From NCBI GenBank assembly GCA_037447605.1, contig CM074808.1, positions 3,782,001 to 3,846,000 of the forward strand: a stretch of 64,000 bases of DNA. The letters are read 5' to 3'. A program made the translations under genes and the position numbers. The notes under the pieces were generated by a model. That model worked only from the letters and a program-made list of their open reading frames with translations. It did not search any database and was not told where the DNA came from. Numbering within the stretch: the first letter of the stretch is position 1; every line of letters begins with the position of its first letter. The DNA comes from Zygnema circumcarinatum SAG 698-1b. Its lineage: Eukaryota > Plantae > Zygnematophyceae. Below, in pieces: positions 36,171 to 64,000 of the stretch.

Positions 36171-37261
36171 CCAGCAGAGTTCCGCACCAAAATTCGGAAT
36201 CAGTTCTCAGCCTCAGCCGCTGCATGAATTTTGCATTCTAAACTATCAACGGAGGCCGACACGTGGCAAAAAGTGCTTAACGTCCACGTGTCCACCTTTC
36301 AATCGTCCATGAGTATCACGTGGCTAACACGTGTCGATTTCTGGTTGGCTCCAACGCCTCCCGGCGATCCAATCGGCTCGCAAATGCGGATGGTTTTTTA
36401 AATCCAGCGGTCGTAAATTTTCGGTTCGGAGGTTGCAAACTTTCCGACTCAGTTTGCAACTCCGCTCCTTCAACCAACGGTTGGTCGAAGTTGGACACGT
36501 GGACCCCGTGTCTTATATGTAAAGGCGACGCAGGTTGCAAACTCGGAAATACGCCAAAGTGATGATGTCACGATGAGGTCAGAATAAAACGACAAGCATT
36601 ATTTCGAAGTATTTTCCCACTTGTGATGCCACAAGCCGTACTGCACCAGATAATGTTTTGTCGTTTAGCGGAATACAGCACTTGGCACTAATGCCGTCCG
36701 AACGAAAATAAAAAACCCGAAACCAAAACCAAACCAAAACCACAGAAACCCAAACTTAGAAACCATCAACACATCAAGATCAAGATCATGATCAAGATCA
36801 AGATCCCACATCAAGATTGTCCGCAAAACCCTGCCCAACATGTTGGGGTTTCTGTACAAAAATGTAATCGCAAGTTTTTGAGCATTGTGGGCCATTCTAG
36901 GCTCCATCCTTCCTTCCCGACACGTGGCTCATCAATTAACTGAAAAAGACCTACACGCTTGGGCACTGCCCGGATCCTTATTAAACTTTGTCCTCTTCTT
37001 CAGGACTTGCCCCTCCTTATGGCCAAAATGTACGGTCATGATGACATGACCGAACTCTAAAAAGGAGGGCCCAAACACAACACAAAAAAAAAAAAACCCC
37101 TTAGCAAAAAAAATAGTAATAATGAATGTAACTTCTTAGCCTATTCTCCACCCCCCGCCACTCCCTTACCTTCCCTTCCCTTCTCTTCCCTTTTCTTTCC
37201 GCTGCGCTCCGTTCCGCTGAGCTCCGTTCCGTTAAACTCCAACATAGAACGGCCCATGCCC

Positions 37262-37292
<31 letters not shown>

Positions 37293-37304
37293 CATGCCCA
37301 TGCC

Positions 37305-40300
37305 TCACTTCTTGCACTTGTTCCGGAGGCTGACCCTGGTGGGCCTGTAGGCCGCGGTGGGCGCGCAGACCGTCCGCCCCAATATGAGCTTCCGGTTGTT
37401 GCAGGGCTGGCCCTGGTTGAGGCACGTGAAGATGTTGAGGTTGCACCGGAACGTGCCCGAGTACACCTTGGTCAGGCAGGTCTGCCCGGGGCCCTTCACC
37501 AGGAGGGCCTTGGCCTTGCGGGGGGGCGTCGTGTACTTCTTGTCCGTGCACGCGTTCCTTGAACACCCGGTGGATCCGAACACTTGGGGCACGTACGGCA
37601 GAATGCAGATCTGCAAGGGGGTGGATCGGAGGGGATGGTGGATCAGGAAGTGGATCAAGAGGTGGATGAGAAGATGGACAGGATGGATGAAAAGGTGGAC
37701 CAGTCGGTGGACAACGGAGCTAGTAAGAAGGGGTGGATCAAATAATGGATCAGAAGGTGGATCAGGTGGATCGAGAGATGGATCCAAAACAAGGAGAAGC
37801 AACGTCTCCTCAAGGATTTCACATTCTGAGGGTTTTCCATAACCTAGAAAGTTATTTGAACGATTGCAGGAGTTTGGGGTTTAGGGTTGAGCGGCGGCCG
37901 ACCAGGTCCCCCTGCACGAGCGCGTCGCAGTTGATCCCGGGGTTGAGCGCGAAGAACTCGAGCGCCGTGGTGCGGCCCGCGTACAGAAAGGCGCAGCCGC
38001 GGCCGCGGTCCGCTGGGAGCACCTCGTAGTACTGCCCGCACAGCTGGCTCTTGTAGTACGGGCTCGGCTCCACGCACACCTGCACGGGGACCGCCACAGG
38101 GAGAGACAGAGAGAGAGAGAGTGAGTGAGAGAGTGAGAGAGGGAGAGGAGGGGAGGGGGAGAGGAGGGGGGGGAGAGAGATAAGGGGAGGGGGGGAGAGA
38201 GAAGTGGTGGGGGGGAGAGAAGGGGGAGGGAGAGAGAGAGGGGGGGAGCGAGAGGGGAATGGAGGGGGAGGAGGGAGAGGGGAAGGAAGGGGGGGAGAGA
38301 GAAGGGGGGAGGGAGATGGGAGGGGGGAGGGAGAGGGAAGGAGGGAGAAGGGGGGACTGAGAGGGGAGGGAGGGAGAGAAGGGGGGTGGAGAGGGAGAGG
38401 GGGAGAGGGAGAAGGGAAGGGAGGGAAGGGGGAGGGAGAGAGAGGGGGGGGAGGTAGAGTGAAGGTTTGGGGTAACGGAACGGCAAGGGGCCTGTCGGGT
38501 CAGAGCGCGCGCACACGCCCTCAGGGGGGACTCCACGAGGCGGATTCAAACGGCGCCACGTGGATTGCGCGCCTTTTTGTCTTTTTTGGGTTTCCAAGTT
38601 TTCTAACCGCGCTTTCCAATCAGTGTTCACCACGTGGTCGCCACGTGGTGAACACGTGGTCAGCGCCAATTGGCTGCGAGCTCTCCGCTTGCGAGCGGCG
38701 GTCGCGGCGGGTCGTTGGATGCGAGTTGACGTGGCAGCCATTCCGGAGGTCAATCGGGACGGATGCCACGTGGCGGCGCGCGGTTGGGCGAACGGACGTT
38801 TTCCAGTCAACGTTTCGCAAAACGGCCCAGGAGAGGTGTCGGGTTTCGAAAAATTTGACGTGGCGCCAACGTGGCGGCCACGTCGGCGCCACGTTGGCGA
38901 CACGTTAGCTCCATGTAGGTGCCACGTCGGCAAAACGAGCCCTCAAGGAACCCGGAGGCGCGTCGCACACGACGGGCGAATTTCTCCATGGAACCCGCCC
39001 TGAGCAAGTCTCTCTCTCTCTCTCTCTCTCGCTCTCTAGCCCCCCTGTCCTCTCTCTCTCCCTCCCCTCATCTCTCTGTCTCACTTCCCGCCCTTCTCTC
39101 GCTCCCTCTTCCTCTCCCTCATCTTCTCACTCTCTCTCCCACCCTTCCCTCTCCCACTCTCTCTCACTCTCACCCTCAACCCCCTCTTCTCTTCTCTTCC
39201 CCCCCCCCCTCCCCCACACACATAATACATCTCCCCCTCTGGCGAGTTTTTAGGGTTCGCATGCAGCGCACGTACCGGCAGATTCGGGCCCAAATCCGCA
39301 TCGGGGTTGTCGCAGTTGAGGCTTGAAGACGGGTTAACGCTCGTCAAGGTCGCCACACTTAGGGACTTGGGAGGCGCAGTAAACAGACTCACGATGCTGT
39401 TACATGTGTCACCCTGTAAAAATAATCAAGAAAAAATTAAACAACGAAAACCCCAGATGGCGCATCACATTATCTTGCCTTAACATTGACTGCACATTTC
39501 AAAAAAAAAAAAAAAAAAATGAAATGTTGCATTCAAAATAAGGGGCTTGACTGCTGCTTACTCTGACAGTGCTGTATATGACTCCGCATTCGATGTCTCG
39601 GTCGACAGGTCCAATTGAGAGCTCGGTCCCTCCCGGAACCGTGTATGCAGTCGTGCCAGATCCGCAAAAAGCATCGAGATACTGCATGCAGGCAGATATG
39701 CAGAATTTAGTTTTTTCCTCAAAAAAGTCAGTGAAAGAGTCAACTATTTTTTCTTTAAGAAAATAACAGAAAATTCTAGAAAACTCAACAACCAGAATGA
39801 CCTGAAAAACGAAAACCAAAAGCAACATCGGAGAAAAGTCGGGCAAAAAATGAGTGAGGGCGTACAGGATTCAAGTACAGAAGGTCAGTGGGGTTCAAAA
39901 AGTTGATCTCTGCAATCTGCATGCAGGTGAGACCTCCCGCCGGGACGGTATAAGTGTTGTTTTCCGCAGAAAGGGCGCCTGCTGCAACTGCAAAGGAAAA
40001 TAGCCACATAGGACGAGAAGTATCGGACAAGGGTTAGTGACTGAGTCAAAACTTGGTTTCACATACGGAAATTTGTGTTTAATAAGTTGGAAAGGCTGCT
40101 CCCTCTTCCTCTTTTCCCATTTCCCTGTTCCTCTTTCCTGTCGGAATTCGAACTTTGAACTTACTGGGAATGCAGGTTACGGAACCGTCCGGTCGCATTC
40201 CTTCTGTGAAACCACTGAAAGCAGAGCAGTCGCATGAGTAGGCCCCTGATCCGGTGTTTGCGCATCTGTAGGAGCAAAATTTGGGGAAAAAAATGTTAGC

Positions 40301-43300
40301 CAAAAATATTGAGGACAAATACAAGCACGAGCCCTGAGACTATGGCATCCTCTCTCTACAGCAAGGGAAAAAAAGTAGAGTTTTCTGGAGGATTTTTGGA
40401 GAACTTACTTGCCAACTCCACATGGGTTGTATGTTGTGGCTGAGCAAACGTCGACTGCATTCAACAACCCCACATAAGTTTCCAGAATTCAAGTTATGTA
40501 GGGCCTCTCAGATGAGGGTGTCTTCAGGCTGCTAAGAAGGGTATGATGCAGAATTAGTCAAGTAACTCAGAATGGGGGCCAACAAAAAAGGGAAAAAGTT
40601 TCGTTTGAAACGTACTTAGTGTGCAGACTTCATTGCCACCGCTCGCTAATATAGCTCAAGAGGGCAAAACATGTGTATCGCGAGCTATACAGCGATCTGA
40701 ATGACATATTCCACTCCACATGTTGTTATGATTCCACCATCGCATGCTGTGACTGCAATTCAACCAGAATCAATGTTAGAATATGCCCCGAGTAAAGCTA
40801 AAATGAGACAGTACGCAGTCCAACAAGGCCCATGTTGAAGACGAAACGGTTGAATTTAACATGGAAACGGCACATGAACTAGCGGTACTGATAGCACTGG
40901 GCTGCGAGTGAGCTGGAGGTGAGCATAGTGCTGGAGGTAAAACCCGGGCCGACCTGAAACCGCCGTGGCGCTGGCAGGAGTAGCAAAGCGCCGGAGGAGG
41001 CCGACTCCGTAAAATGAGGCAAGCGTGGGAGACAGCTGAGGGGGTGGAGGAGGGACCCGAGGCACCAATGGGGAGGGAAAGAGGAAGGATAATTGTGGAG
41101 GGAAAGTTGGTGGGATAGGCGCGGGGTTGGGAGGGGGGGATGAGACGGAAGGGCTTGGTGCAGGAGATGGGGCGGGAGGGGTGAGTGGAGACGGAGAGGG
41201 AGCGGGAGGGAGAGGGGAGGGAGAAGGGGCTGGAGGGGTGAGTGGAGAGGGAGAGGGAGCGGGAGGGGTGAGAGGGGAGGGAGCAGGGGCTGGAGGGGTG
41301 AGTGGAGAGGGAGAGGGAGCGGGAGGGGTGAGAGGGGAGGGAGCAGGGGCTGGAGGGGTGAGTGGAGAGGGAGAGGGAGAGGGGTGAGAGGGGAGGGAGC
41401 GGGGGCGGGAGGGGTGAGTGGAGTTGGAGAGGGAGCGGAGGGGTGAGAGGGGAGGGAGTGGGGCTGGAGGAGTGGAGATGGAGAAGGGATGTAGGGTAGA
41501 GTGGGAGGGAGCAGGGGGCTGAGTGGGTGAGTGGAGGGAGAGGGAGCGGGGGGGGAGGGGGGGAGGAGAGTGGAGGGAGGGAAGCAAGCAGGAGGAGGGG
41601 AGCAAGTGGGAGGCGGAGCGTGGAGCCGGAGAGGAGCCGGAGCGGAAAGGGGAGGGAGCGGGGGTGGGGGAGTCGAAAGGGGAGGGAGCGGGGGTGGGGG
41701 AGTCGAAAGGGGAGGGAGCGGGGGTGGGGAAGTTGAGAGGGGAGGGAGCGGGGGCGGGAGGGGTGAGTGGAGAGGGAGAGGGAGCGGGAGGGGTGAGAGG
41801 GGAGGGAGCAGGGGCTGGAGGGGTGAGTGGAGATGGAGAGGGAGCGGGAGGGGTGAGTGGGGAGGAGCCTGCATGGGAGGGAAGTGAGCGAGCCGAGGAT
41901 GGTTTTATAAAGAGCGGGGAGGGAGCCGGGGTGGGGTGAGTGGAGTTGGGAGAGTGGAGTGACCGGAAAGGAGGGAGCGGTGGTCGAAAGGGAGTGGAGC
42001 GCAGCGGGAAGCTGAGAGGGGAGGGAGCAGGGGCTGGAGGGGTGAGTGGAGAGGGAGAGGGAGTGGTGAGTGGAGCAGGGGCTGGAGGGGTGAGTGGAGA
42101 GGGTGAGGGAGCGGGGGCGGTGAGGGGTGAGTGGAGAGGGAGAGGGAGCGGGAGGGGTGAGAGGGGAGGGAGCGGGGGCGGGAGGGGTGAGTGGAGACGG
42201 AGAGGGAGCGGGAGGGGTGAGAGGGGAGGGAGCGGGGGTGGGGGAGGGAGCGGGGGTGGGGGAGTTGAAAGGGGAGGGAGCGGGGGTGGGGAAGTTGAGA
42301 GGGGAGGGAGCGGGGGCGGGAGGGGTGAGTGGAGAGGGGAGCCGGAGCGGGAGGGGTGAGTGGAGTGGGAGAGGGAGCGGGAGGGGTGAGAGGGGAGGGA
42401 GCGGGGGTGGGGGAAGAGAGGGGAGGGAGGGGGGGGGGGGGGCGGGGGGAGGGAGGGGGGGGGGGGGGGGGGAGGGAGCGGGGGAGGGGAAGTCGAGGGA
42501 GCGGGAGGGCTGAGAGGGGAGGGAGCGGGGGCGGGAGGGGTGAGTGGAGTTGGAGAGGGAGCGGGAGGGGTGAGAGGGGAGGGAGCAGGGGCTGGAGGGG
42601 TGAGTGGAGAGGGAGAGGGAGCGGGGGCGGGAGGGGTGAGTGGAGAGGGAGAGGGAGCGGGAGGGGTGAGAGGGGAGGGAGCGGGGGCGGGAGGGGGGCG
42701 GGAGGGGTGAGTGGAGTGGGAGAGGGAGCGGGAGGGGTGAGAGGGGAGGGAGCGGGGGCGGGGGAGTTGAGAGGGAGAGGGGAGGGAGCGGGGGCGGGAG
42801 GGGTGAGTGGAGAGGGAGAGGGAGCGGGAGGGGTGAGAGGGGAGGGAGCGGGGGCGGGAGGGGTGAGTGGCGATGGCGAGGGAGCGGGAGGGCTGAGAGG
42901 GGAGGGAGCGGGGGGGGGGGGGGGGGGAGTTGAGAGGGGAGGGAGCGGGGGTGGGGAAGTTGAGAGGGGAGGGAGCGGGGGCGGGAGGGGTGAGTGGAGT
43001 TGGAGAGGGAGCGGGAGGGGTGAGTGGGGAGGGAGAGGGAGCGGGAGGGGTGAGTGGAGTTGGAGAGGGAGCGGGAGGGGTGAGAGGGGAGGGAGCGGGG
43101 GTGGGGGAGTCGAAAGGGGAGGGAGCGGGGGTGGGGAGCGTTGGGGAAGTTGAGAGGGGAGGGAGCGGGGGCGGGAGGGGTGAGGGGTGAGTGGAGAGGG
43201 AGAGGGAGCGGGAGGGGTGAGAGGGGAGGGAGAGGGAGCAGGAGGGGTGAGAGGGGAGGGAGCGGGGGAGGGGAAGAGGGGCGGGGAGGGAGCGGGGGCG

Positions 43301-46300
43301 GGCGGGGGGGGAGGGGAGGGTGGGGGCGGGGGAGGGGTGAGAGGGGAGGGAGCGGGGGCGGGAGGGGTGAGTGGAGGGAGAGGAGCGGGAGGGTGAGAGG
43401 GAGGAGGGGGGTGGGGGAGTCGAAAGGAGGGAGCGGGGGTGGGGAAGTTGAGAGGGGAGGGAGCGGGGGCGGGAGGGGTGAGTGGAGTTGGAGAGGGAGC
43501 GGGAGGGGGGAGGGGTGAGTGGAGAGGGAGAGGGAGCGGGAGGGGTGAGAGGGGAGGGAGCCGGGGCGGGAAAGGGGAGTGGAGGGAGAGGGAGCGGAGG
43601 GGTGAGAGCAGAGGAGCGGGGTGGTTGAGAGGGGAGGAGCCGGGGTGGGAGGGGTGAGTGGAGTGGGAGTGGGAGCGGGAGGGGTGAGTGGAGTGGGAGA
43701 GGGAGCGGGAGGGGTGAGAGGGGAGGGAGCGGGGGTGGGGGAGTTGAAAGGGGAGGGAGCGGGAGAAGGGAAGTCGAGAGGGGAGGGAGCCGGGGCGGGA
43801 GGGGTGAGAGGCGAGGGAGCGGGGGTGGGGAAGTTGAGAGGGGAGGGAGCCGGGGTGGGAGGGGTGAGTGGAGTGCGGCGGGGGTGAGGAGCGAGGGGAG
43901 AGGGAGTGGGGAGGGGGTGAGGGGTGAGAGGGGAGGGAGCGGGGGGGGGGAGTTGAATGGGGGAGGGGTGAGAGGGGAGGGAGCGGGGGTGGGGAAGTTG
44001 AGAGGGGAGGGAGCCGGGGCGGGAGGGGTGAGTGGAGATGGAGCAGGAGCGGGAGGTGTGAGTGGAGAGGGAGGGGAGCAGGGGGGTGAGAGGGGAGGGA
44101 GCGGGGGTGGGGAAGTTGAGAGGGGAGGGAGCCGGGGCGGGAGGGGTGAGTGGAGTGGGAGAGGGAGCGGGAGGGGTGAGAGGGGAGGGAGCGGGGGTGG
44201 GAAGTTGAGAGGGGAGGGAGCCGGGGCGGGAGGGGTGAGTGGAGTTGGAGTGGGAGCGGGAGGGGTGAGAGGGGAGGGAGCGGGGGAGGGAGCGGGGAGG
44301 AAGTCGAGAGGGAGAGCCGGGGCGGGAGGGGCAAGGAGACGGAGAGGGAGCGGAGGGGCAGGAGGGAGGAGCGGGGGTGGGGGAGTTGAAAGGGGAGGGA
44401 GCGGGAGAAGGGAAGTCGAGAGGGGAGGGAGCGGAGGGCGGGAGGGGTGAGAGGGGAGGGAGCGGGGGAGGGGGGGTCGAAAGGGGAGGGAGCCGGGGCG
44501 GGAGGGGTGAGTGGAGAGGGAGCGGGAGGGGTGAGTGGGGAGGGAGAGGGGGCGGGAGGGGTGAGAGGGGAGGGAGAGGGAGCGGGAGGGGGAGTTGAAA
44601 GGAGGGAGCGGGGGTGGGGAAGTTGAGAGGGGAGGGAGCGGGGGTGGGAGGGGTGAGTGGAGTGGGAGTGGGAGCGGGAGGGGTGAGAGGAGGAGGGAGC
44701 GGGGGTGGGGGAGTGAAAGGGGAGGGAGCGGGGGTGGGGAAGTTGAGAGGGGAGGGAGCGGGGGCGGGAGGGGTGAGTGGAGTTGGAGAGGGAGCGGGAG
44801 AGTGAGTGGAGGCATAAAGGTATAGGAGTGGTGGTGGCCGAGAGGGAGGAGCCGGGGCGGAGGGGTGGGGAGTGGAGGGAGGAGCGGAGGGGTGAGAGGC
44901 GAGGGATGGGGGTGGGGAAGAGGGAGTGGTCGGGGTGGGAGGTGAGTGGAGGGAGGGAGCGGAGGGGTGAGGGAGGGGAGAGGGAGCGGAGGGGTGAGAG
45001 GGGAGGGAGCCGGGGCGGGAGGGGTGAGTGGAGTGGGAGAGGGAGCGGGAGGGGTGAGAGGGGAGGGAGCGGGGGCGGGAGGGGTGAGAGGGGAGGGAGC
45101 GGGGGTGGGGGGGTCGAAAGGGGAGGGAGCCGGGGCGGAAGGGGTGAGTGGAGATGGAGCAGGAGCGGGAGGTGTGAGTGGAGAGGGAGAGGGAGCAGGA
45201 GGGGTGAGAGGGGAGGGAGCGGGGGTGGGGAAGTTGAGAGGGGAGGGAGCCGGGGCGGGAGGGGTGAGTGGAGTGGGAGAGGGAGCGGGAGGGGTGAGAG
45301 GGGAGGGAGCGGGGGGAGGGGGTGAGAGGGGAGGGAGCCGGGGCGGGAGGGGTGAGTGGAGAGAGGGAGCGGGAGGGGTGAGAGGGAGGGAGCGGGGGTG
45401 GGGGAGTGAGGGGAGGGAGCGAGGGGAGTCGAGAGGGGAGGGAGCCGGGGCGGGAGGGGTGAGTGGAGACGGAGAGGGAGCGGGAGGGGTGAGAGGGGAG
45501 GGAGCGGGGCTGGGAGAAGAGGGGGAGGGGGAGGTGGAGGGGAGTGGGGACGGAGCCGGAGCCGGAACTAGAGATGGAGATGGTGATGGAAACGGAGTTG
45601 AAGTTGAAGTGGGAGAGGGAGAAGGAGAGGGGACATGGGAGGGAGTGGGCGACTGTGAGGGGGAGGGAGAGGGAGATGGGGATGGGGAGGGGTTCGGAGT
45701 TGGAGAAGCGGAGAGGACGGGGGACGGTGCCAGTACCGGAAACAGATTCGGGGACGGAGACTCAGAAGGAGAGGCTGCGGGAGACGGGAATGGAGAGGAA
45801 GCAGGGGAGAGGGAGGGAAACGGTGAGGGAGAGGGAGTTGGAAATGGCGAGGGAGATGCGGAGGGGGATGGAGTTGGGGAAGGTGATGGGGAGGGGGCTG
45901 TAGTCGGAGATGGTGATGGAGTCGGAGGTGGGAAATCGATTACTATGGGGGATGGTGATGGGGATGGAGATGGAGATGGGGACGGAAATGGGGAGAGAGA
46001 GGTAGACGGGGAGGGAGAGGGAGATGGCGAGGTGGATGGAGTTGGGGAAGGTGATGGGGAGGGGGCTGTAGTCGGAGATGGTGATGGAGTCGGGGATGGG
46101 AAATCGATTAATATTGGGAATGGTGATGGGGATGGAGATGGAGATGGGGACGGAAATGGGGAGAGAAAGGGAGACGGGGAGAGGGAAGGAGATGGCGTGG
46201 GGGTCGGAATTGGGGAAGGTGATGGGGAGGGGGCTGTAGTCGGAGGTTGGAAATCGAATACTATTGGGAATGGTGATGGGGATGGAGATGGAGATGGGGC

Positions 46301-49300
46301 CATGGACGGAGCTAGTGTGGGGGCACTGAGGGGTGTTTGGAGAGTTGCAGGCCGAGTATCCCGTAACCGAGGAGGAGGAGCCATTGAATCTTGTGCTATA
46401 GATGTTGGAACAACGGAGTCCCATACCCAACCCCACATCAAAGAAAGAGGGGTTTTAACACGATTTTGAGAAGATTATGAGTACACATGAGCTTTAGATG
46501 TGTGCTCCTCTCCATGCGTTCAAAATCGCAAATGTGTCGATACTAGTTGGCGGACTGATACGAAGCTTACAGCGTGTTGATGCTTCAAAGAAATGAAAAC
46601 TTCAAAAAAAAAAAAAAAAAAAAGAGAAGAAAGGAAAAAAGAAAAAAAAAAGGAAATGAAATGAAATGAAACTTTGAAGCTCAAATGGACGGAAGGCAAA
46701 AAGAGCATACCCAGTAGTTGCCTGCGACGCCGGTATGGGGACTCTTTGAACCCTGCCGGATAAGGGTTTATGACCGGGTAAACGGGGCCAACTTGATACA
46801 TGTTTGCGATTCCCGAGCCTGTCATAGAGCGATAGAGACGAATGTACCCATTTTCTCCCCAATCTGTGCCCCATGAGTTCTTTGCAAGCCAATATGGTAC
46901 CCCTTCTTCCGTTCCATAGCCAATGACTACCAAGTTATGATCCGGAAGCCCGGTGCAATCACCATCTGGATCAAGAAATATTCCCTGTCACAGAGGAAAA
47001 CCTTTGAATTATTCAAAAGTCGTAGAAAGCAATCGTCCTTACGTATGCATCATTTTTCAGGTCATCTCAACTCGCAGCATATCACATACCTGAAGGTCAT
47101 ATTCAGCGAGGAATTGGAAAAACGATAACGTGCTCTGCACTCACCGCTTGGTACTCAAAGAATGCTGAGCATGTGCAGATCGCAATGATAACGGGTTGAC
47201 TGTTGACCGCCTGCATGAGAGCGGTAGCGTTATCACTAGCAACTTGTTCCCAACCGACCACCGAGCTCCTTTCCTTGTCAAAGGAATTCTCCTGCAACAC
47301 AAACAGTACGTCGCGCATGGCTTGTTTTCAGTGAATCGTCAAATGTACAAAGTGAGTTCGTAGAAGTCGGTCAAGGAGTTAGGAAACAAGGAGGGGTTAG
47401 GTTTTGAGGGTGCCTGCACTTTGTGTCAGAAACCCTCACCAAAGCTGTGTTGCAGGTCCCGCTTCTGACTTCTCCCGGTAATAGAGGGTAGTCGGAAGCA
47501 TAATTCAAACCTCCAAGCCTTGCCACGTACTCCAACACATCTCTTGGATCTCCTCCATCACATGTAATTCCGCTCTTCGGCAAACAGTCCAACACTTGCT
47601 GCACAGAAAGGGGGGGACCCACTGTGTAGTCATTGATGTTGATCGCAAGCTCAATGGCTTTCACAGAACTGAAGGCCCAGCATCCACCTGCCACATGGAG
47701 AACAAGGAAAATTTCTTAACATCACTCTTGCGTTCATCAATCTTTTTTATGTTTGAAGAGTGCTGGATGGTGAAAGAATGATCGATACAAACCAAGCCCA
47801 ATGGTTTAAGAAACGTAGTCAGAATGTAATTACGGGTAAGATTACTCACTGCATAGTCCTTGATATGCAGGCTCTGAACTGTAGCTCGCAAAGCTCACAG
47901 TTTCGCGGATATCAATGGCAGGAACACTTTGGTATCGAAAAAGGCTGTTGTATTTGAGAAAGTCAAGAGGCTCGCAGGGAGCAACACACTCCTCAATAAC
48001 GGCATAGTGATCGACATAACCCGTTGTCAAAATGCCACTATTCGGCTGCAAAAGCTCAACCAATACAACCTCGTCAGCTTACTTCACCACAAGCATTTCG
48101 AGAAATTTGAGGTTTTCTGGGGTCGCATTGTGCAAGTCTGTTTCCTTTGAGCTCGCAGACACGGAGGAGACTTTGGCTCAGAGTCAGTTTCATATACTGA
48201 GAGGAGGGAGAGAGAAGAGAGAGAGGAGGGAGGCAGTATGGTACCAAGCCGGGAATGGGAGCAGGAGGAGGAATGTTGTAGGTCCCATTGTTGCACTCAA
48301 CAGCCGGTGCATAGTCGCAGGTTTGACCTATTGGGTCCCAAAGGAGCCCTCCGAGACATGCGCCTCCGTCAACAAAGCCTCCATCTTCGTCGCATTGACA
48401 CCATTGGCTGTTTCACATGTGAAAAACAACAACATGTGGTCAGCGCATCATATTGTTACTCCTTTATTATCATTAACTTTTGAGGAGAAATTGGTCGAAA
48501 ACTTTTGAATCTGAACCCCCTATTGTAAGCGTTTGCGATAATGCTGTCAGAAGAAAAGGAGAGAATAAAGACCATTCACAGAGGGTCCCAGGGGGAATTC
48601 AATTAGTGGACTCTGTTCTGCAGTAGTTGGGCTGAGACCATCTCTTGCTCACCGGCATGGCGGCTGTGCTATGAAGTTCTGGAAGGTGCCATTCTTCCTC
48701 CCTTGGCAGCAGCCATCGTCTTGCTGAATGTACCACAGACAGAACACAAGTCAAGCCGACCGCTCACTTTTCCTTTGCTCTTTGCTCTCTTTGTTCTCTC
48801 TCACAGCCTCTCTTCTCTGTCTCTGTCACTGTAACGGGTGTCCCCATCCCCCTCCCCCTCTCTCACTCTCCTCGTTCTCACTCTCTCCCTCTCTCTCACA
48901 CTCTCCCCCCATCTCCCCCAGCCCTACTCCTCGACATCACAGTAAGAGAACCTTATTCCTTTCCTCTTGTATCCCTCCTCTGCATTGTACACCTTCCCGG
49001 CGAAGGATAGAAGAAAACTCACCACTTCAATGAGCGGCGGCAAAGCAGTGAGATTCCATGTAAAGAAATCAAAGAATGGCGGCGGCGGTGTTGGGCCGTA
49101 AAACGGCGGAGGACGCGGTTTTACACATGGAAACACCGACGGCCTCCCTGTCGTGTTCACACCTCGAGGGGGTCGAGGGGGTCTATGGGGACCCCTATAG
49201 CACGGCTCCCCTCTGTGCTTCCCAATTCCGGGAGGATGACCTCCCACTCCTGGAGGGTGTCTCGCTCTCCCAGGAGGGTGCCTCCCACTGCCAGGTGGAT

Positions 49301-51029
49301 GCCTCCCTCTGCCACGTGGATGCCTCCCTCTGCCACGTGGACGCCTCCCTCTGCCAGGTGGATGGTGCCCTGAGCCAGGTGGATGGTGTCCTCGTCCAGG
49401 AGGATGCCTACGCCTAACAGGAGGTGAAGGAGTTGGAGGTGAAGGAGGTGAAGGAGATCGTGGTGAAGGAGGTGAGGGAGGAGCAGGAGGAGGAGGAGGA
49501 GGCGGTTTCTTTCTCCTCCTCCTTCCCACTCCAGGAGGATGGTGTCCTCTACCGGGAGGATGTTTCCCCACTCCTGGAGGATGCCTCCCTCTAGTCGACC
49601 GCTGTCGTAGAATTCTATGGCCCGCAACAGTCTCAGAAAAATCTTCCTCTCCCTCCCCATCTTTGTATTCGTCGAATTCTACCGTCTCCTCTCCATCCTC
49701 TGCCGTATCCTTCTCCTCCTCTTCCTCCGCCCCCTCGCCCTCCATGCTCTCTCTGCTCCCGCTTACAGCTCGAGCACAGGAGGAGAGATGGGGAAAGTCG
49801 CAGCCTCCCGACAAGGAGTTAAAGAGGAGGCCTCTCCCACAGGCAGTCTGCCGCAGCACCTGTTCTCTTTCACACTCGCAGAAGGCGCTGCAGGAAACCA
49901 CGAAGAAAGCAAACGATCAAAACTATTGCCCTGCCCTCCTTTAGGGTCGGAGCATGGCTGCAGGGGCGAGAGAGGGGGGGAGGGGAACAGGGAGGACACG
50001 GACGGAGGGAGGGACGGAGAAGAGGGAGAAGAGAGGAGATGGAAAGAGGGAGAAAGGAGAGGCGGGGAGGGTAGAGGGAGAGGGAGAGGGAGAGGGAGAG
50101 GGAGAGGGAGAGGGAGAGGGAGAGGGAGAGGGAGAGGGAGAGGGAGAGGGAGAGGGAGAGGGAGAGGAGAGGGAGAGGGAGAGGGAGAGGGAGAGGAGAG
50201 GGAGAGGGAGAGGGAGAGGGAGCGTGAGAGGGAGAGAGGGAGAGGGAGAGGGAGAGGAGAGGGAGAGGGAGAGGGAGAGGAGAGGGAGAGGGAGAGGGAG
50301 AGGGAGAGGAGAGGGAGAGGGAGAGGGAGAGGGAGAGGGAGAGGGAGAGGGAGAGGGAGAGGGAGAGGGAGAGGGAGAGGGAGAGGAGAGGGAGAGGGAG
50401 AGGGAGGGAGAGGGAGAGGGAGGAGAGGGAGAGGGAGGAGAGGGAGAGGGAGAGGGAGAGAGAGAGAGAGAGAAGAGGAGGCACCTGCAGGGTGGCCACA
50501 CAAAGGGGTCGGCGTGCAGACCGTCGGAGCGGTTGCTGCAGCAGCTCACGATCGCCATCTGAGCCCAGTTTTTTATCCAAATACCGAATCGTAAATTTAA
50601 AATCATTCAATAGCATGTCTTAAAACAATGCTTTCTGCTTAAAATATTTTGATTTTTTTTTCATTTTATTTCCTATTGAAATTTCTCCTTTTCATCATTA
50701 TCGCCGGCATTCTGGAACTGGGTTCACTTTTTGCGAAAAAAACGAAACATTGGTTTTAGGTCTGCCGCTCGTACCCTGATGTCTGGCTTGACACGTGGCG
50801 GTGCCTCATTCGCGCGCTCTGGCTCTGGCGCTCTGGCCTCTGACGACCCCCAAAAAAAATTCTTCGCCATTGTGAGTGCTGCCCGAAAGGTGCGCTGCGG
50901 AGCCTCCGATTGGCCGAGAACGACCGGCGGCTGCCCGAGAAGGAGGAGGAGGAGGGCGAGCTGCAGGAGGAGAGGCCATGGCCGGTGCCACGTGGCAGCC
51001 TTTGACCTCACCGCCGTGGAGCCTGTCAT
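37305..51029 (-). CDS. Secreted mosaic protein (~2,900 aa): signal peptide - CBM14-like - acidic/basic-His/Pro linkers - CBM14-like - papain C1A protease - AGP/extensin-like stalk - EGF-like - 4x Cys-rich LysM-like
   Basis: Phase-compatible GT-AG exons: 51029-50775, 50558-50485, 49887-49023, 48723-48653, 48407-48245, 48045-47850, 47687-47440, 47291-47145, 46984-46711, 46395-40954, 40454-40409, 40265-40165, three LysM exons within ~39990-39255, 38079-37903, 37610-37305. C1A motifs QGLCS|[28 protein letters not shown]. The junction between the stalk and the EGF exon is the least certain. Confidence 0.8.
37618..37790. repeat. GGTGGATCA-core minisatellite (~9-12 bp period) in the last intron of the mosaic gene
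   Basis: ggtggatcgg..ggtggatcaggaagtggatcaagaggtggatgag..ggtggatcaggtggatcgag. Confidence 0.75.
38550..38930. promoter_or_regulatory. Intronic cluster of G-box/ACGT motifs
   Basis: CACGTG at ~38556, 38631, 38642, 38653 and 38766, plus several GACGTGGC/GCCACGTC/GCCACGTT variants, in under 400 bp. Confidence 0.45.
40616..40752 (-). pseudogene. Degenerate EGF-like exon (pseudo-exon) inside the mosaic gene
   Basis: Good acceptor (ttgaattgcag) and donor (A|GTACG). It starts [14 protein letters not shown] and ends GGNEVCTL, resembling the next exon ([15 protein letters not shown]..VTCIP), but the interior has frameshifts and stops. Confidence 0.5.
41140..46300 (-). repeat. Coding tandem repeat array: ~30-bp units encoding LTPPAP(S/A)PSP with [20 protein letters not shown] variants, preceded by three ~170-bp units encoding PSPFPI(V/L)(F/I)[11 protein letters not shown]
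   Basis: Directly visible periodicity such as ggagcgggaggggtgagaggggagggagcg; lies within the 5.4-kb exon 46395-40954. Confidence 0.9.
49240..49410 (-). repeat. Coding 21-bp repeat encoding HPPGRG(R/H) heptapeptides
   Basis: ggatgcctccctctgccacgt repeated; translation [48 protein letters not shown]. Confidence 0.85.
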
Positions 51030-62477: not shown

Positions 62478-64000
62478 ATGGCTGCCACGTGGCGCTACCA
62501 TGGCTCGGATTCCATGCGCTTCCTCCTCCTTGTGCTCCTCCTCTTCGTAGCGGAGCAGCCATGGCGGGCCCATGGCTGCCCTCCTCCTCCTCGCTGGACC
62601 CTCCTCGCCGCCTTCACCGCAAAGGCGCGCACCGTTTTAAGGAGGGCGGGGGAGCCAAAGGAGAGGGTGTCGCTGCGATCTGGAAAATATTTACACAAGG
62701 TGCGCCTTGGTCTATTTTTTTTTATGTATAATTTTAAGATGATGATTCCATTTTTTTAGTTTTTGGTTTTTACGATTTCGAGAGTGAACGATACCTTTAA
62801 TGTTAATGAAATGTTGAACAACTTGGGTTCGAATTTGGTTTAAAAATGATGACTTGCTGGAGAGGAAGAGGAAGAATGGCAACTGAGCGAGACCCAATGA
62901 TTGAAACGTTTCAATTTTTAATTTTAGATTTAAATTTTGCAGAGGTGGTCTCCCCCTCCCCTTCACGCCTCAAAAAGAAAAAGGAACGGGAATCAGCAAA
63001 AAAAGAGATTTGATGGCTCAAAATAGATCAACACATTCACATCAAGAGAATGTTCAACAACTTAGAGCTATGAAGCATCCTTGGAATCATCGGCAATGGT
63101 TGGCCATACCAATGGTTGGAATCATTGACAATGGTTGGCCATAAGGTGGAGAGAGTGGGAGAGAGAGGAGAGAGCGAGAAAGTACAGACATTAAACAGGA
63201 AGAATATATAACATTTGAGCTTCTTATTCTCTCCCCCTCCCTTTGATTTCGCCCTAAATTCTTCTCGTTGTAGGTTGAGCATTGCAAGAAGGGCGGGCCT
63301 TTGAATTGTTGTAGCGATCGATCCGATGGACTTTATCGAGACCCCTTCACATGGCCTCCCTGCAGGTACAGTATTCCCCCTCGCTAAATTCATCAAGGCA
63401 ACGGTTGGACTGTGTGGAGAGAGAGGGGGAGAGAAGGAAGAGGGAAAGAGAAAGGGAGAGAGAGGGAGAGGGAGAGGGGGAGGGAAAGGGAGAGGGAGAG
63501 GGAGAGAGAGAGAGAGGGGGAGGGAGAGAGAGGGAGAGGGGGAGGAAGAGGGAAAGCGAGAGGGGGAGGAAGAGGGAAAGAGAGAGGGAGAGAGAGTGGG
63601 AGAGGGAGAGGGAGAGAGGGAGAGAGAGGGAGAGCGAGAGGAAGAGGGAGAGAGAGGGAGAGGGAGAGAGAGAGGGAGGGAGAGAGAGTGGGAGAGGGAG
63701 AGGGTGAGAGAAATGGAGAGGGAGAGAGAGGGAGAGGTAGAAGGAGAGGGAGAGGGAGGGGGAGAGAGAGAGGGGGGGAAGGACGAGGGAGAGAGACGGA
63801 GCGGGAGAGGGAGAGAGATGGAGAGGTCGAGGGAGAGGGAGACCTACCTCTTTTAGAAAAACACAAGAGAGATGCACTACAAGAAGACACAGCTAAGTGC
63901 CTAAGACTTAGCGTATCAGATAATGCTCAAGAGGATGTTGAAGGGGACTTGAACTTGCGTTCATGTGTTTGAAGTGAAGTTATTTGTTTTTTGCAGCGCA
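62478..64000 (+). CDS. 5' part of a paralog of the secreted CBM14-like mosaic gene (continues beyond the window)
   Basis: Exon 62478-62699 has a signal peptide (MAATWRYHGSDSMRFLLLVLLLFVAEQPWRAHG). Exon 63274-63365 encodes VEHCKKGGPLNCCSDRSDGLYRDPFTWPPCR, matching [20 protein letters not shown] at 50558-50485 with the same phase-2 intron. The acceptor ttgcag|CGCA at 63996/63997 gives S-A as in the first gene. An in-frame upstream ATG exists at 62448. Confidence 0.8.

Follow-up and report, generated by a model that had tools for sequence, protein, structure and literature searches.

The question raised by this locus is whether a single gene of the zygnematophycean alga Zygnema circumcarinatum SAG 698-1b encodes a giant secreted protein in which chitin-binding modules, a papain-type protease, a very long proline-rich stalk, EGF-like modules, and LysM modules follow each other in one reading frame. 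The locus has multiple exons and runs along the minus strand, from 51029 to 37305, of a 64-kb window (64,000 nucleotides [nt], approximately 50% G+C; positions 3,782,001 to 3,846,000 of contig CM074808.1). All of the features described below are on that strand, and positions are those of the window. A first-pass annotation made from the letters alone had proposed one reading frame for the entire locus. The results obtained differ in strength along its length. The tail was proven by RNA and is joined in frame, via an additional EGF exon (EGF-A), to the end of the proline-rich tract. The analysis also supports the prediction that the locus encodes a secreted mosaic in which an apparently active papain is flanked at either end by putative modules of the N-acetylglucosamine (GlcNAc)-binding type. 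We lean towards a single gene in which the giant stalk is translated in full; we are much more confident in the domain content and in the assignment to the family.

The expressed tail and its EGF exons

Contigs from four public RNA runs of three studies, labelled with the same organism, were placed on 36700-41150 (4451 letters). One contig in each of the four runs joined the seven 3' exons from 40454 to 37307 through GT..AG introns without mismatches. Once joined, these exons form an open frame that runs to the TAG at 37305-37307 and encodes one EGF-like module (EGF-B) followed by four cysteine-rich units of approximately 55 residues. EGF-B starts in the exon at 40409-40454 and is completed at 40165-40265. 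The first part of LysM-like unit 1 is at 39866-39987, its end and the start of unit 2 are at 39562-39681, and units 2 and 3 are encoded at 39276-39413 and 37903-38079, respectively. The last coding exon (37305-37610) contains unit 4 and the stop codon. The RNA joints and the translation define all of these exons, together with a profile in the cases of the unit 2 and unit 3 exons.

In the RNA, the acceptor at 40454 was joined to a donor at 40616/40615 (..CTAA/GTACGT), and not to the donor at 40954. The junction 40954/40454 of the first-pass annotation was unused, and RNA depth was 0 over 40872-41020 in all four runs. Repeat masking was not the cause of this gap because the skipped repeats total 508 letters, 424 of which are accounted for by three repeats elsewhere. 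The transcript instead passes through EGF-A at 40616-40752, which was identified from RNA and a homologue alignment (acceptor ..TTGCAG/TCACAG at 40753/40752 and donor GTACGT at 40615). EGF-A is 137 nt long in the window and 150 nt long in the RNA, and the latter is the exact length of EGF-A in P0121, a homologue assembled from public transcripts. EGF-A of P0121 scored 24.7 bits against the Pfam EGF family (PF00008), for which the cut-off is 21.5. EGF-B contains six cysteines and scored 14.4 bits (E 0.047) on a partial piece against the same cut-off.

Upstream of EGF-A, the contigs pass through a block of approximately 182 nt and reach 41088-41150, where 63 nt match the window. When followed back across this block, the EGF frame coincides with frame 2 of the proline-rich stalk at 41088. 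Since the expressed gene contains the EGF-A exon, it has 18 exons, and not the 17 originally counted. The seven 3' exons are joined exactly by RNA, and the nine 5' exons are in phase in our model.

A search of 1.84 billion representative proteins with the last exon retrieved a single homologue, P0121. It derives from transcript contigs of other runs (Logan contigs L001-L003 of SRR8128903, SRR8128907, and SRR8128908), consists of EGF-A, EGF-B, and four LysM-like units, and is 50% identical to the tail over 327 amino acids (aa) in a pairwise alignment. EGF-A of P0121 (TACDGG...GNEGCTLI) corresponds to 40752-40616 in the window. The placement of window exon fragments on P0121 with MAFFT was incorrect; therefore, pairwise alignment was used. 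P0121 resembles the present tail in the order of EGF-A, EGF-B, and four cysteine-bridged LysM-like units and also in the proline-rich tract directly before EGF-A: its contigs hold at least 93 Pro/Ser-rich residues (at least 280 nt) in frame before EGF-A and then break. The gene caller began P0121 at a GTG just past the Pro-rich stretch and called a "gene" on the opposite strand inside that stretch. The Pro-rich parts of such proteins are systematically missing from protein collections because of these two behaviors of the caller.

The assignment of the four tail units to LysM was accepted on the basis of profile and structure predictions. Pfam LysM (PF01476) gave no match with the window exons alone, and its best score was 18.4 bits (E 0.002) for unit 2 of P0121, which is below the cut-off of 20.9. 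A profile built from eight units (four from the window and four from P0121) matched the LysM structures of chitinase A, 4pxv (E 1.5e-6) and 5bum (E 2.1e-5), with the cysteine positions aligned. An AlphaFold2 (AF2) model of P0121 unit 2 calculated from the eight-unit alignment reached a predicted local distance difference test (pLDDT) score of 82.2 and showed a beta-alpha-alpha-beta arrangement (E3-5, H12-19, H28-34, and E54-56). In a Foldseek search of the PDB, the top eight matches to this model were all LysM, and included LysM domains of fern, horsetail, and Volvox chitinases. Target TM-scores ranged from 0.41 to 0.84, with the six single-domain entries at 0.72-0.84, and the probability was up to 0.99; E-values were weak, as expected for 58 residues. 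An AF2 prediction of P0121 as a single sequence had a pLDDT of 36 and was left out of the fold search. The earlier proposal of four LysM modules was thus borne out by the profile match to fern and horsetail chitinase A and by the LysM-like predicted fold, whereas Pfam alone remained below the cut-off.

The 3' untranslated region (UTR) extends over 36820-37304. Contigs cover approximately 36774/36820-37152, with a sequencing-adapter-like loose end at 36820, and a GCCCAT repeat at 37153-37306 was skipped in contig placement. The contigs of two runs had one or two additional A after 37083, a difference in homopolymer length between RNA and the assembly. Run X1 also contained low-depth contigs (2-7 versus approximately 109 for the mRNA contig) within introns at 37623-37879 and 38710-38968. 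Unspliced precursor, antisense RNA, and DNA carry-over are candidate sources of these contigs.

The protease and its CBM14-like head

The nine 5' exons were rebuilt by hand from splice consensus and phase, with GT..AG introns. The resulting model is a 764-aa open frame that ends in phase 1 and contains, in this order, a signal peptide, CBM14-like module 1, an acidic stretch, basic repeats, CBM14-like module 2, approximately 45 residues, and a papain domain. The RNA runs contained 0.35-0.45 of the sampled words of 46400-49000, and the exonic share of our model in this interval is 0.42.

Exon 1 (50775-51029; sequence and model) begins with the ATG at 51029 and comprises 85 codons, with a donor of GTACGA. 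It encodes the predicted signal peptide, which is the sole strongly hydrophobic segment in the protein. Exon 2 (50485-50558; phase 0 in and phase 2 out) carries the first half of CBM14-like module 1. The second half is in exon 3 (49023-49887; donor GTGAGT), the end of which was selected in the model by donor strength and phase. Exon 3 also encodes the acidic stretch and HPPGRG-type basic repeats around a core. The repeat block (49248-49601) contains approximately 14 copies of a basic seven-residue HPPG(R/S/V)G repeat (21-nt period) flanking a core of 15 residues. It is located between the acidic stretch and CBM14-like module 2 and has no family match. Module 2 is divided between exons 4 (48653-48723) and 5 (48245-48407).

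Both CBM14-like modules show the same framework of six cysteines, CC-x17-C-x2-3-C-x-C-x10-11-C-x12-C-x7-C, and are interrupted by an intron at the same position, after "PPC". Against Pfam CBM_14 (PF01607; cut-off 22.1), exon 5 scored 20.4 bits (E 5.8e-4) and exon 3 scored 17.0 bits (E 0.0067), with these scores being for exon halves alone that cover profile positions 18-53. A longer unspliced piece scored 23.0 bits; however, it included intron-coded residues. A phmmer search of PDB sequences with CBM14-like module 2 yielded nothing significant. The two CBM14 modules of the first-pass annotation are retained as modules with the six-cysteine framework and CBM_14 matches, but these matches are at or below the Pfam cut-off and we refer to the modules as CBM14-like. 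Elsewhere in the window, tblastn detected a segment on the plus strand (63301-63363) in which 21 residues align with the first half of CBM14-like module 1 at 71% identity.

Exon 6 (47850-48045) encodes approximately 45 residues without a family match and then the first part of mature papain, including the Gln of the oxyanion hole (AYQGLC). Exon 7 (47440-47687) contributes the catalytic Cys (SGCWAFS) and exon 8 (47145-47291) the middle of the domain; the latter alone gave no Pfam match and is in phase between exons 7 and 9. Exon 9 (46711-46984) contains the catalytic His and Asn (KNSWGTDWG) and a tail ending in ..RRRRQLL, and leaves in phase 1 through the donor GTATGC. Pfam Peptidase_C1 (PF00112; cut-off 20.7) matched exon 7 with 49.7 bits (E 6.6e-13; profile positions 26-101) and exon 9 with 67.3 bits (E 2.7e-18). 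The closest solved relatives of exon 9 are the plant papain-like cysteine proteases actinidin and ficin, and the DH..GYG and NSW..WGE..GY motifs are conserved relative to actinidin. The spliced 764-aa model has the catalytic Gln, Cys, His, and Asn in conserved motifs, confirming that the catalytic set is intact as originally proposed.

Only the approximately 45 unassigned residues of exon 6 separate CBM14-like module 2 from the start of mature papain. Pfam detected no I29 propeptide on exon 6 or the exons upstream at E values up to 10, and none of the nine 5' exons matched a leucine-rich repeat (LRR) or EGF family. Searches of protein collections with exon 9 and P0121 returned only P0121 and one ervatamin-like fragment of sweet potato.

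The proline-rich tract and the case for one gene

The protease and the tail are separated by the proline-rich stalk, a candidate single exon of 1769 codons at 41088-46395, which was delineated by TRF and composition, and by RNA at its last 63 nt. Most of it is a tandem array of 30/60/90-nt units at 41163-45691 (TRF). The frame 2 translation consists of 41% P, 19% S, and 14% L, with 191 SP, 98 AP, and 81 TP dipeptides, the glycomodules of arabinogalactan protein-like stalks, and only 11 SPPP motifs. At 46711/46395, a donor (GTATGC) and an acceptor (..CTATAG) have compatible phases, and the frame continues through 46395-41088 without a stop. In the RNA, the exon extends beyond 41088 by the 182-nt block; the stalk exon would then have a length of 5308 + 182 = 5490 nt, a multiple of three, and phase 1 at both ends. 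The boundary previously written as ..RRRRQLLG/AQDS fits the frame, but the residue at the joint is Ala (G + CA), and the product would read ..RRRRQLL-A-QDS.

The reading that we favor is that this CT-rich tandem-repeat exon of 5.5 kb (phase 1 in and 1 out) lies between the protease and the EGF-EGF-LysMx4 tail of one gene. If it is translated throughout, it would add approximately 1830 Pro/Ser/Leu-rich residues, and the protein would have approximately 2980 residues. This reading would entail the splice from the protease to the stalk and translation of the whole array. The RNA contigs carry the 63 nt of 41088-41150, continue for approximately 48-72 nt, and break at approximately 41198-41222 in the repeat array, which is what a transcript continuing into the repeats would give.

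Several observations weigh against the translation of the complete stalk in one gene. C and T account for 64% and 21%, respectively, of the coding strand of the stalk, and each of the three frames stays open for 1220-1872 codons. The 30-nt unit is found in all three phases, in at least 21 phase runs (at least 20 changes), which is unusual for a constrained coding repeat. RNA coverage of the stalk comprises its 3' end up to approximately 41222, and the junction 46711/46395 was placed by phase and splice sites. CT-rich arrays with long Pro-like open frames are also present in the introns at 38080-39275 (RNA-proven) and 49888-50484 (modelled). No annotated or assembled protein with the stalk or tail of this gene was found in the protein collections searched. 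Furthermore, the RNA and the window diverge over 41087-40639, the window copy of EGF-A is frame-broken and needs at least three frameshifts to align with EGF-A of P0121, and there is no GT in the window where the 182-nt block (the upstream exon) of the RNA ends.

That the stalk frame is open does not indicate coding because all frames are open, the repeat shifts its phase, and similar arrays are found in introns. The one-frame argument of the first-pass annotation, in which the missing stop counted in favor of coding, consequently carries no weight, since all three frames are open by composition. In this genome, long CT-rich arrays yield stop-free proline-rich open reading frames (ORFs), whether exonic or not, and these ORFs are not evidence of extensin-like exons. 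The intron arrays contain (AGAGGG)~77 and (TC)~84 microsatellites, with stop-free Pro/Ser/Leu-rich ORFs of 230-350 codons on the gene strand. Due to the phase flips, the translation of approximately half of the array switches to other "dialects" (PLPLHSPL.. and SHPSRSLS..). At the start of the stalk, differences between the 168-nt repeats numbered 12, 9, and 13 by codon position, which was uninformative. A search of a protein collection of 5.8 billion clusters with the stalk ORF returned low-complexity matches only, with neither itself nor an annotated protein among them, and queries with P0121 or exon 9 retrieved no transcript-derived protein that crosses the junction between the protease and stalk.

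At least one stretch of the locus disagrees with the RNA. Over 40639-41087, which includes the donor at 40954, the contigs carry the approximately 182-nt block and the middle of EGF-A, neither of which matches the window at 95% or more. Within EGF-A, agreement between the RNA and the window is limited to 26 nt at the start and 23 nt at the end. The expressed form is either this locus, misassembled at 41087-40639, a different allele or strain, or a second copy that is nearly identical. It is conceivable, although we consider it doubtful, that the window holds a decayed allele or paralogue in which the frameshifts of EGF-A are real and the upstream donor has been lost, with the RNA originating from an intact other copy, allele, or strain. 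The 150 nt of EGF-A shared by the RNA and P0121, versus 137 nt with at least three frameshifts in the window, are consistent with decay. A 30-nt loose end of the RNA upstream of 40752 points in the same direction: it is absent from the whole window at up to four mismatches, yet it resembles 40930-40902, with several substitutions and indels. In addition, the version of 40872-41020 in the window was matched by no contig in any of the four runs. However, not one base differs between the flanks and the RNA, either in the more than 1100 nt on the downstream side or in at least 63 nt on the upstream side. This would be odd for a separate allele or paralogue, and it fits a local assembly fault beside a 4.5-kb repeat equally well. 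Moreover, the tail is present only once in the window.

It is also unlikely that most of the stalk is not protein, namely, that the array is intronic or an optional cassette and exon 9 is joined to a short Pro-rich linker or directly to EGF-A, which would give a protein of approximately 1200 residues. This alternative is compatible with the phases: exon 9 ends in phase 1 and EGF-A opens with two bases that complete the codon, so that skipping of the stalk stays in frame. The three open frames, at least 20 changes in repeat phase, and the arrays in introns of the same gene also speak for it. In contrast, the contigs hold at least 63 nt of the 3' flank of the array in frame, and after a further 48-72 nt or so they stop at the edge of the repeats and not at a protease exon. 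In the contigs of P0121, EGF-A is likewise preceded by Pro-rich sequence in frame (at least 280 nt), where the contigs break, and among the loose ends listed, none at 40752 matches exon 9.

The merging of two genes, one for a CBM14-papain protein ending after exon 9 and the other for a stalk-EGF-LysM glycoprotein, is highly improbable: an unspliced 46711 would allow the frame to read on for 63 codons to a stop at 46520-46522, but the donor and acceptor fit in phase, and the stalk frame does not open until 46474 and has no ATG with a signal peptide ahead of it, whereas a Pro-rich glycoprotein and disulfide-rich EGF/LysM modules need secretion.

Proposed function and relation to known systems

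We propose that the locus, with its CBM14 head, belongs to a lineage-specific family of secreted papain-type proteases that are large and modular, and in which a variable head would be followed by papain, EGF, EGF, and LysMx4. The head would consist of two CBM14-like modules linked by a charged, Pro-rich linker, and the protease would have a full catalytic set and no I29 propeptide. The Pro-rich tract may be hydroxylated and O-glycosylated into a rigid rod or spacer, while the LysM and CBM14 modules may bind chitin or peptidoglycan-type GlcNAc chains. Proteolysis at such surfaces could be directed at chytrid or fungal parasites, bacteria, or the wall matrix of the alga itself. The first-pass annotation described the protein as matrix-tethered. 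However, it has no transmembrane segment, and its C terminus (..SLRNKCKK) has no hydrophobic tail and, thus, no glycosylphosphatidylinositol (GPI)-anchor signal of the type found in classical arabinogalactan proteins. Because there is no membrane or GPI anchor, any tethering would be via glycan binding or wall cross-links.

A more far-reaching model is offered as a tentative speculation. The protein may be a wall-anchored protease of approximately 3000 residues, in which a rod glycosylated on hydroxyproline (Hyp), several hundred nm in length if fully extended, separates CBM14-papain from an EGF-LysM anchor and lets the protease reach to chitin-bearing parasites. The rod would be a phase-symmetric cassette exon that is included or skipped, with a repeat readable in three phases. 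A short isoform is possible because skipping of the stalk (exon 9 to EGF-A) keeps the frame.

If the family is as it seems, algal relatives close to land plants unite LysM glycan recognition and papain-like proteases, both of them pillars of plant immunity, within single secreted proteins and under exchangeable heads. If this is true, the origin of chitin sensing and apoplastic protease defense becomes directly testable. The present gene is set apart by its CBM14-type head, a rarity in the plant lineage, and by a Hyp-rich spacer that is possibly extreme. A literature search for the papain-EGF-EGF-LysMx4 family or architecture found no description of it. The previous assertion that no characterized protein has this architecture needs to be qualified: the homologue P0121 exists, and Volvox provides a looser precedent. 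The kind of protein is already known from secreted algal hydrolases with carbohydrate-binding modules on Hyp-rich spacers, whereas the family is apparently undescribed.

The precedent in Volvox carteri reportedly dates from Amon, Haas & Sumper in 1998, who are said to have described a chitinase and a cysteine protease in which an extensin-like Hyp-rich spacer lies between chitin-binding repeats and the catalytic domain. These enzymes and the present protein are alike as secreted hydrolases of green algae, and the Volvox chitinase LysM structures 5k2l and 5yz6 were among the fold matches of the tail units. However, in contrast to the reported Volvox architecture, CBM14 and LysM are predicted here at opposite ends, EGF modules are present, the Pro-rich tract would be far longer, and the lineage is different. 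The existence of a set of extracellular matrix (ECM) enzymes induced by pheromone and wounding in Volvox is borne out by citing papers and PDB titles. A pheromone-induced C1A protease of Volvox falls outside the cathepsin B/F/H/L groups (PMC2474614).

The likeness to CBM14 proteins, such as animal peritrophins and chitinases and fungal Avr4, consists of the six-cysteine framework and marginal Pfam CBM_14 matches in two modules. The modules differ from these proteins in being fused, in our model, to a protease and in occurring in an alga of the plant lineage.

RD21 is a C1A protease with an I29 propeptide, a Pro-rich hinge of tens of residues, and a Cys-rich C-terminal granulin domain. Papain-like cysteine proteases of this type in plants share with the present gene the order of a C1A protease, a Pro-rich part, and a Cys-rich C-terminal module. 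In contrast to RD21, this gene has no I29, its tract may be approximately 1830 residues long, and EGF and LysM modules take the place of granulin.

The family-18 chitinase A of Pteris ryukyuensis and Equisetum arvense (4pxv, 5ylg, and 5bum) provided the best profile and fold matches of the LysM-like units, which have cysteines at the same positions (GDTC .. N.G..C.NL..GQ.VC). The LysM domains of the fern and horsetail enzymes are described as chitin-binding. Chitinase A differs from the present protein in that the catalytic partner is a chitinase and not a protease, there are one or two LysM domains, and EGF, CBM14, and a long stalk are absent.

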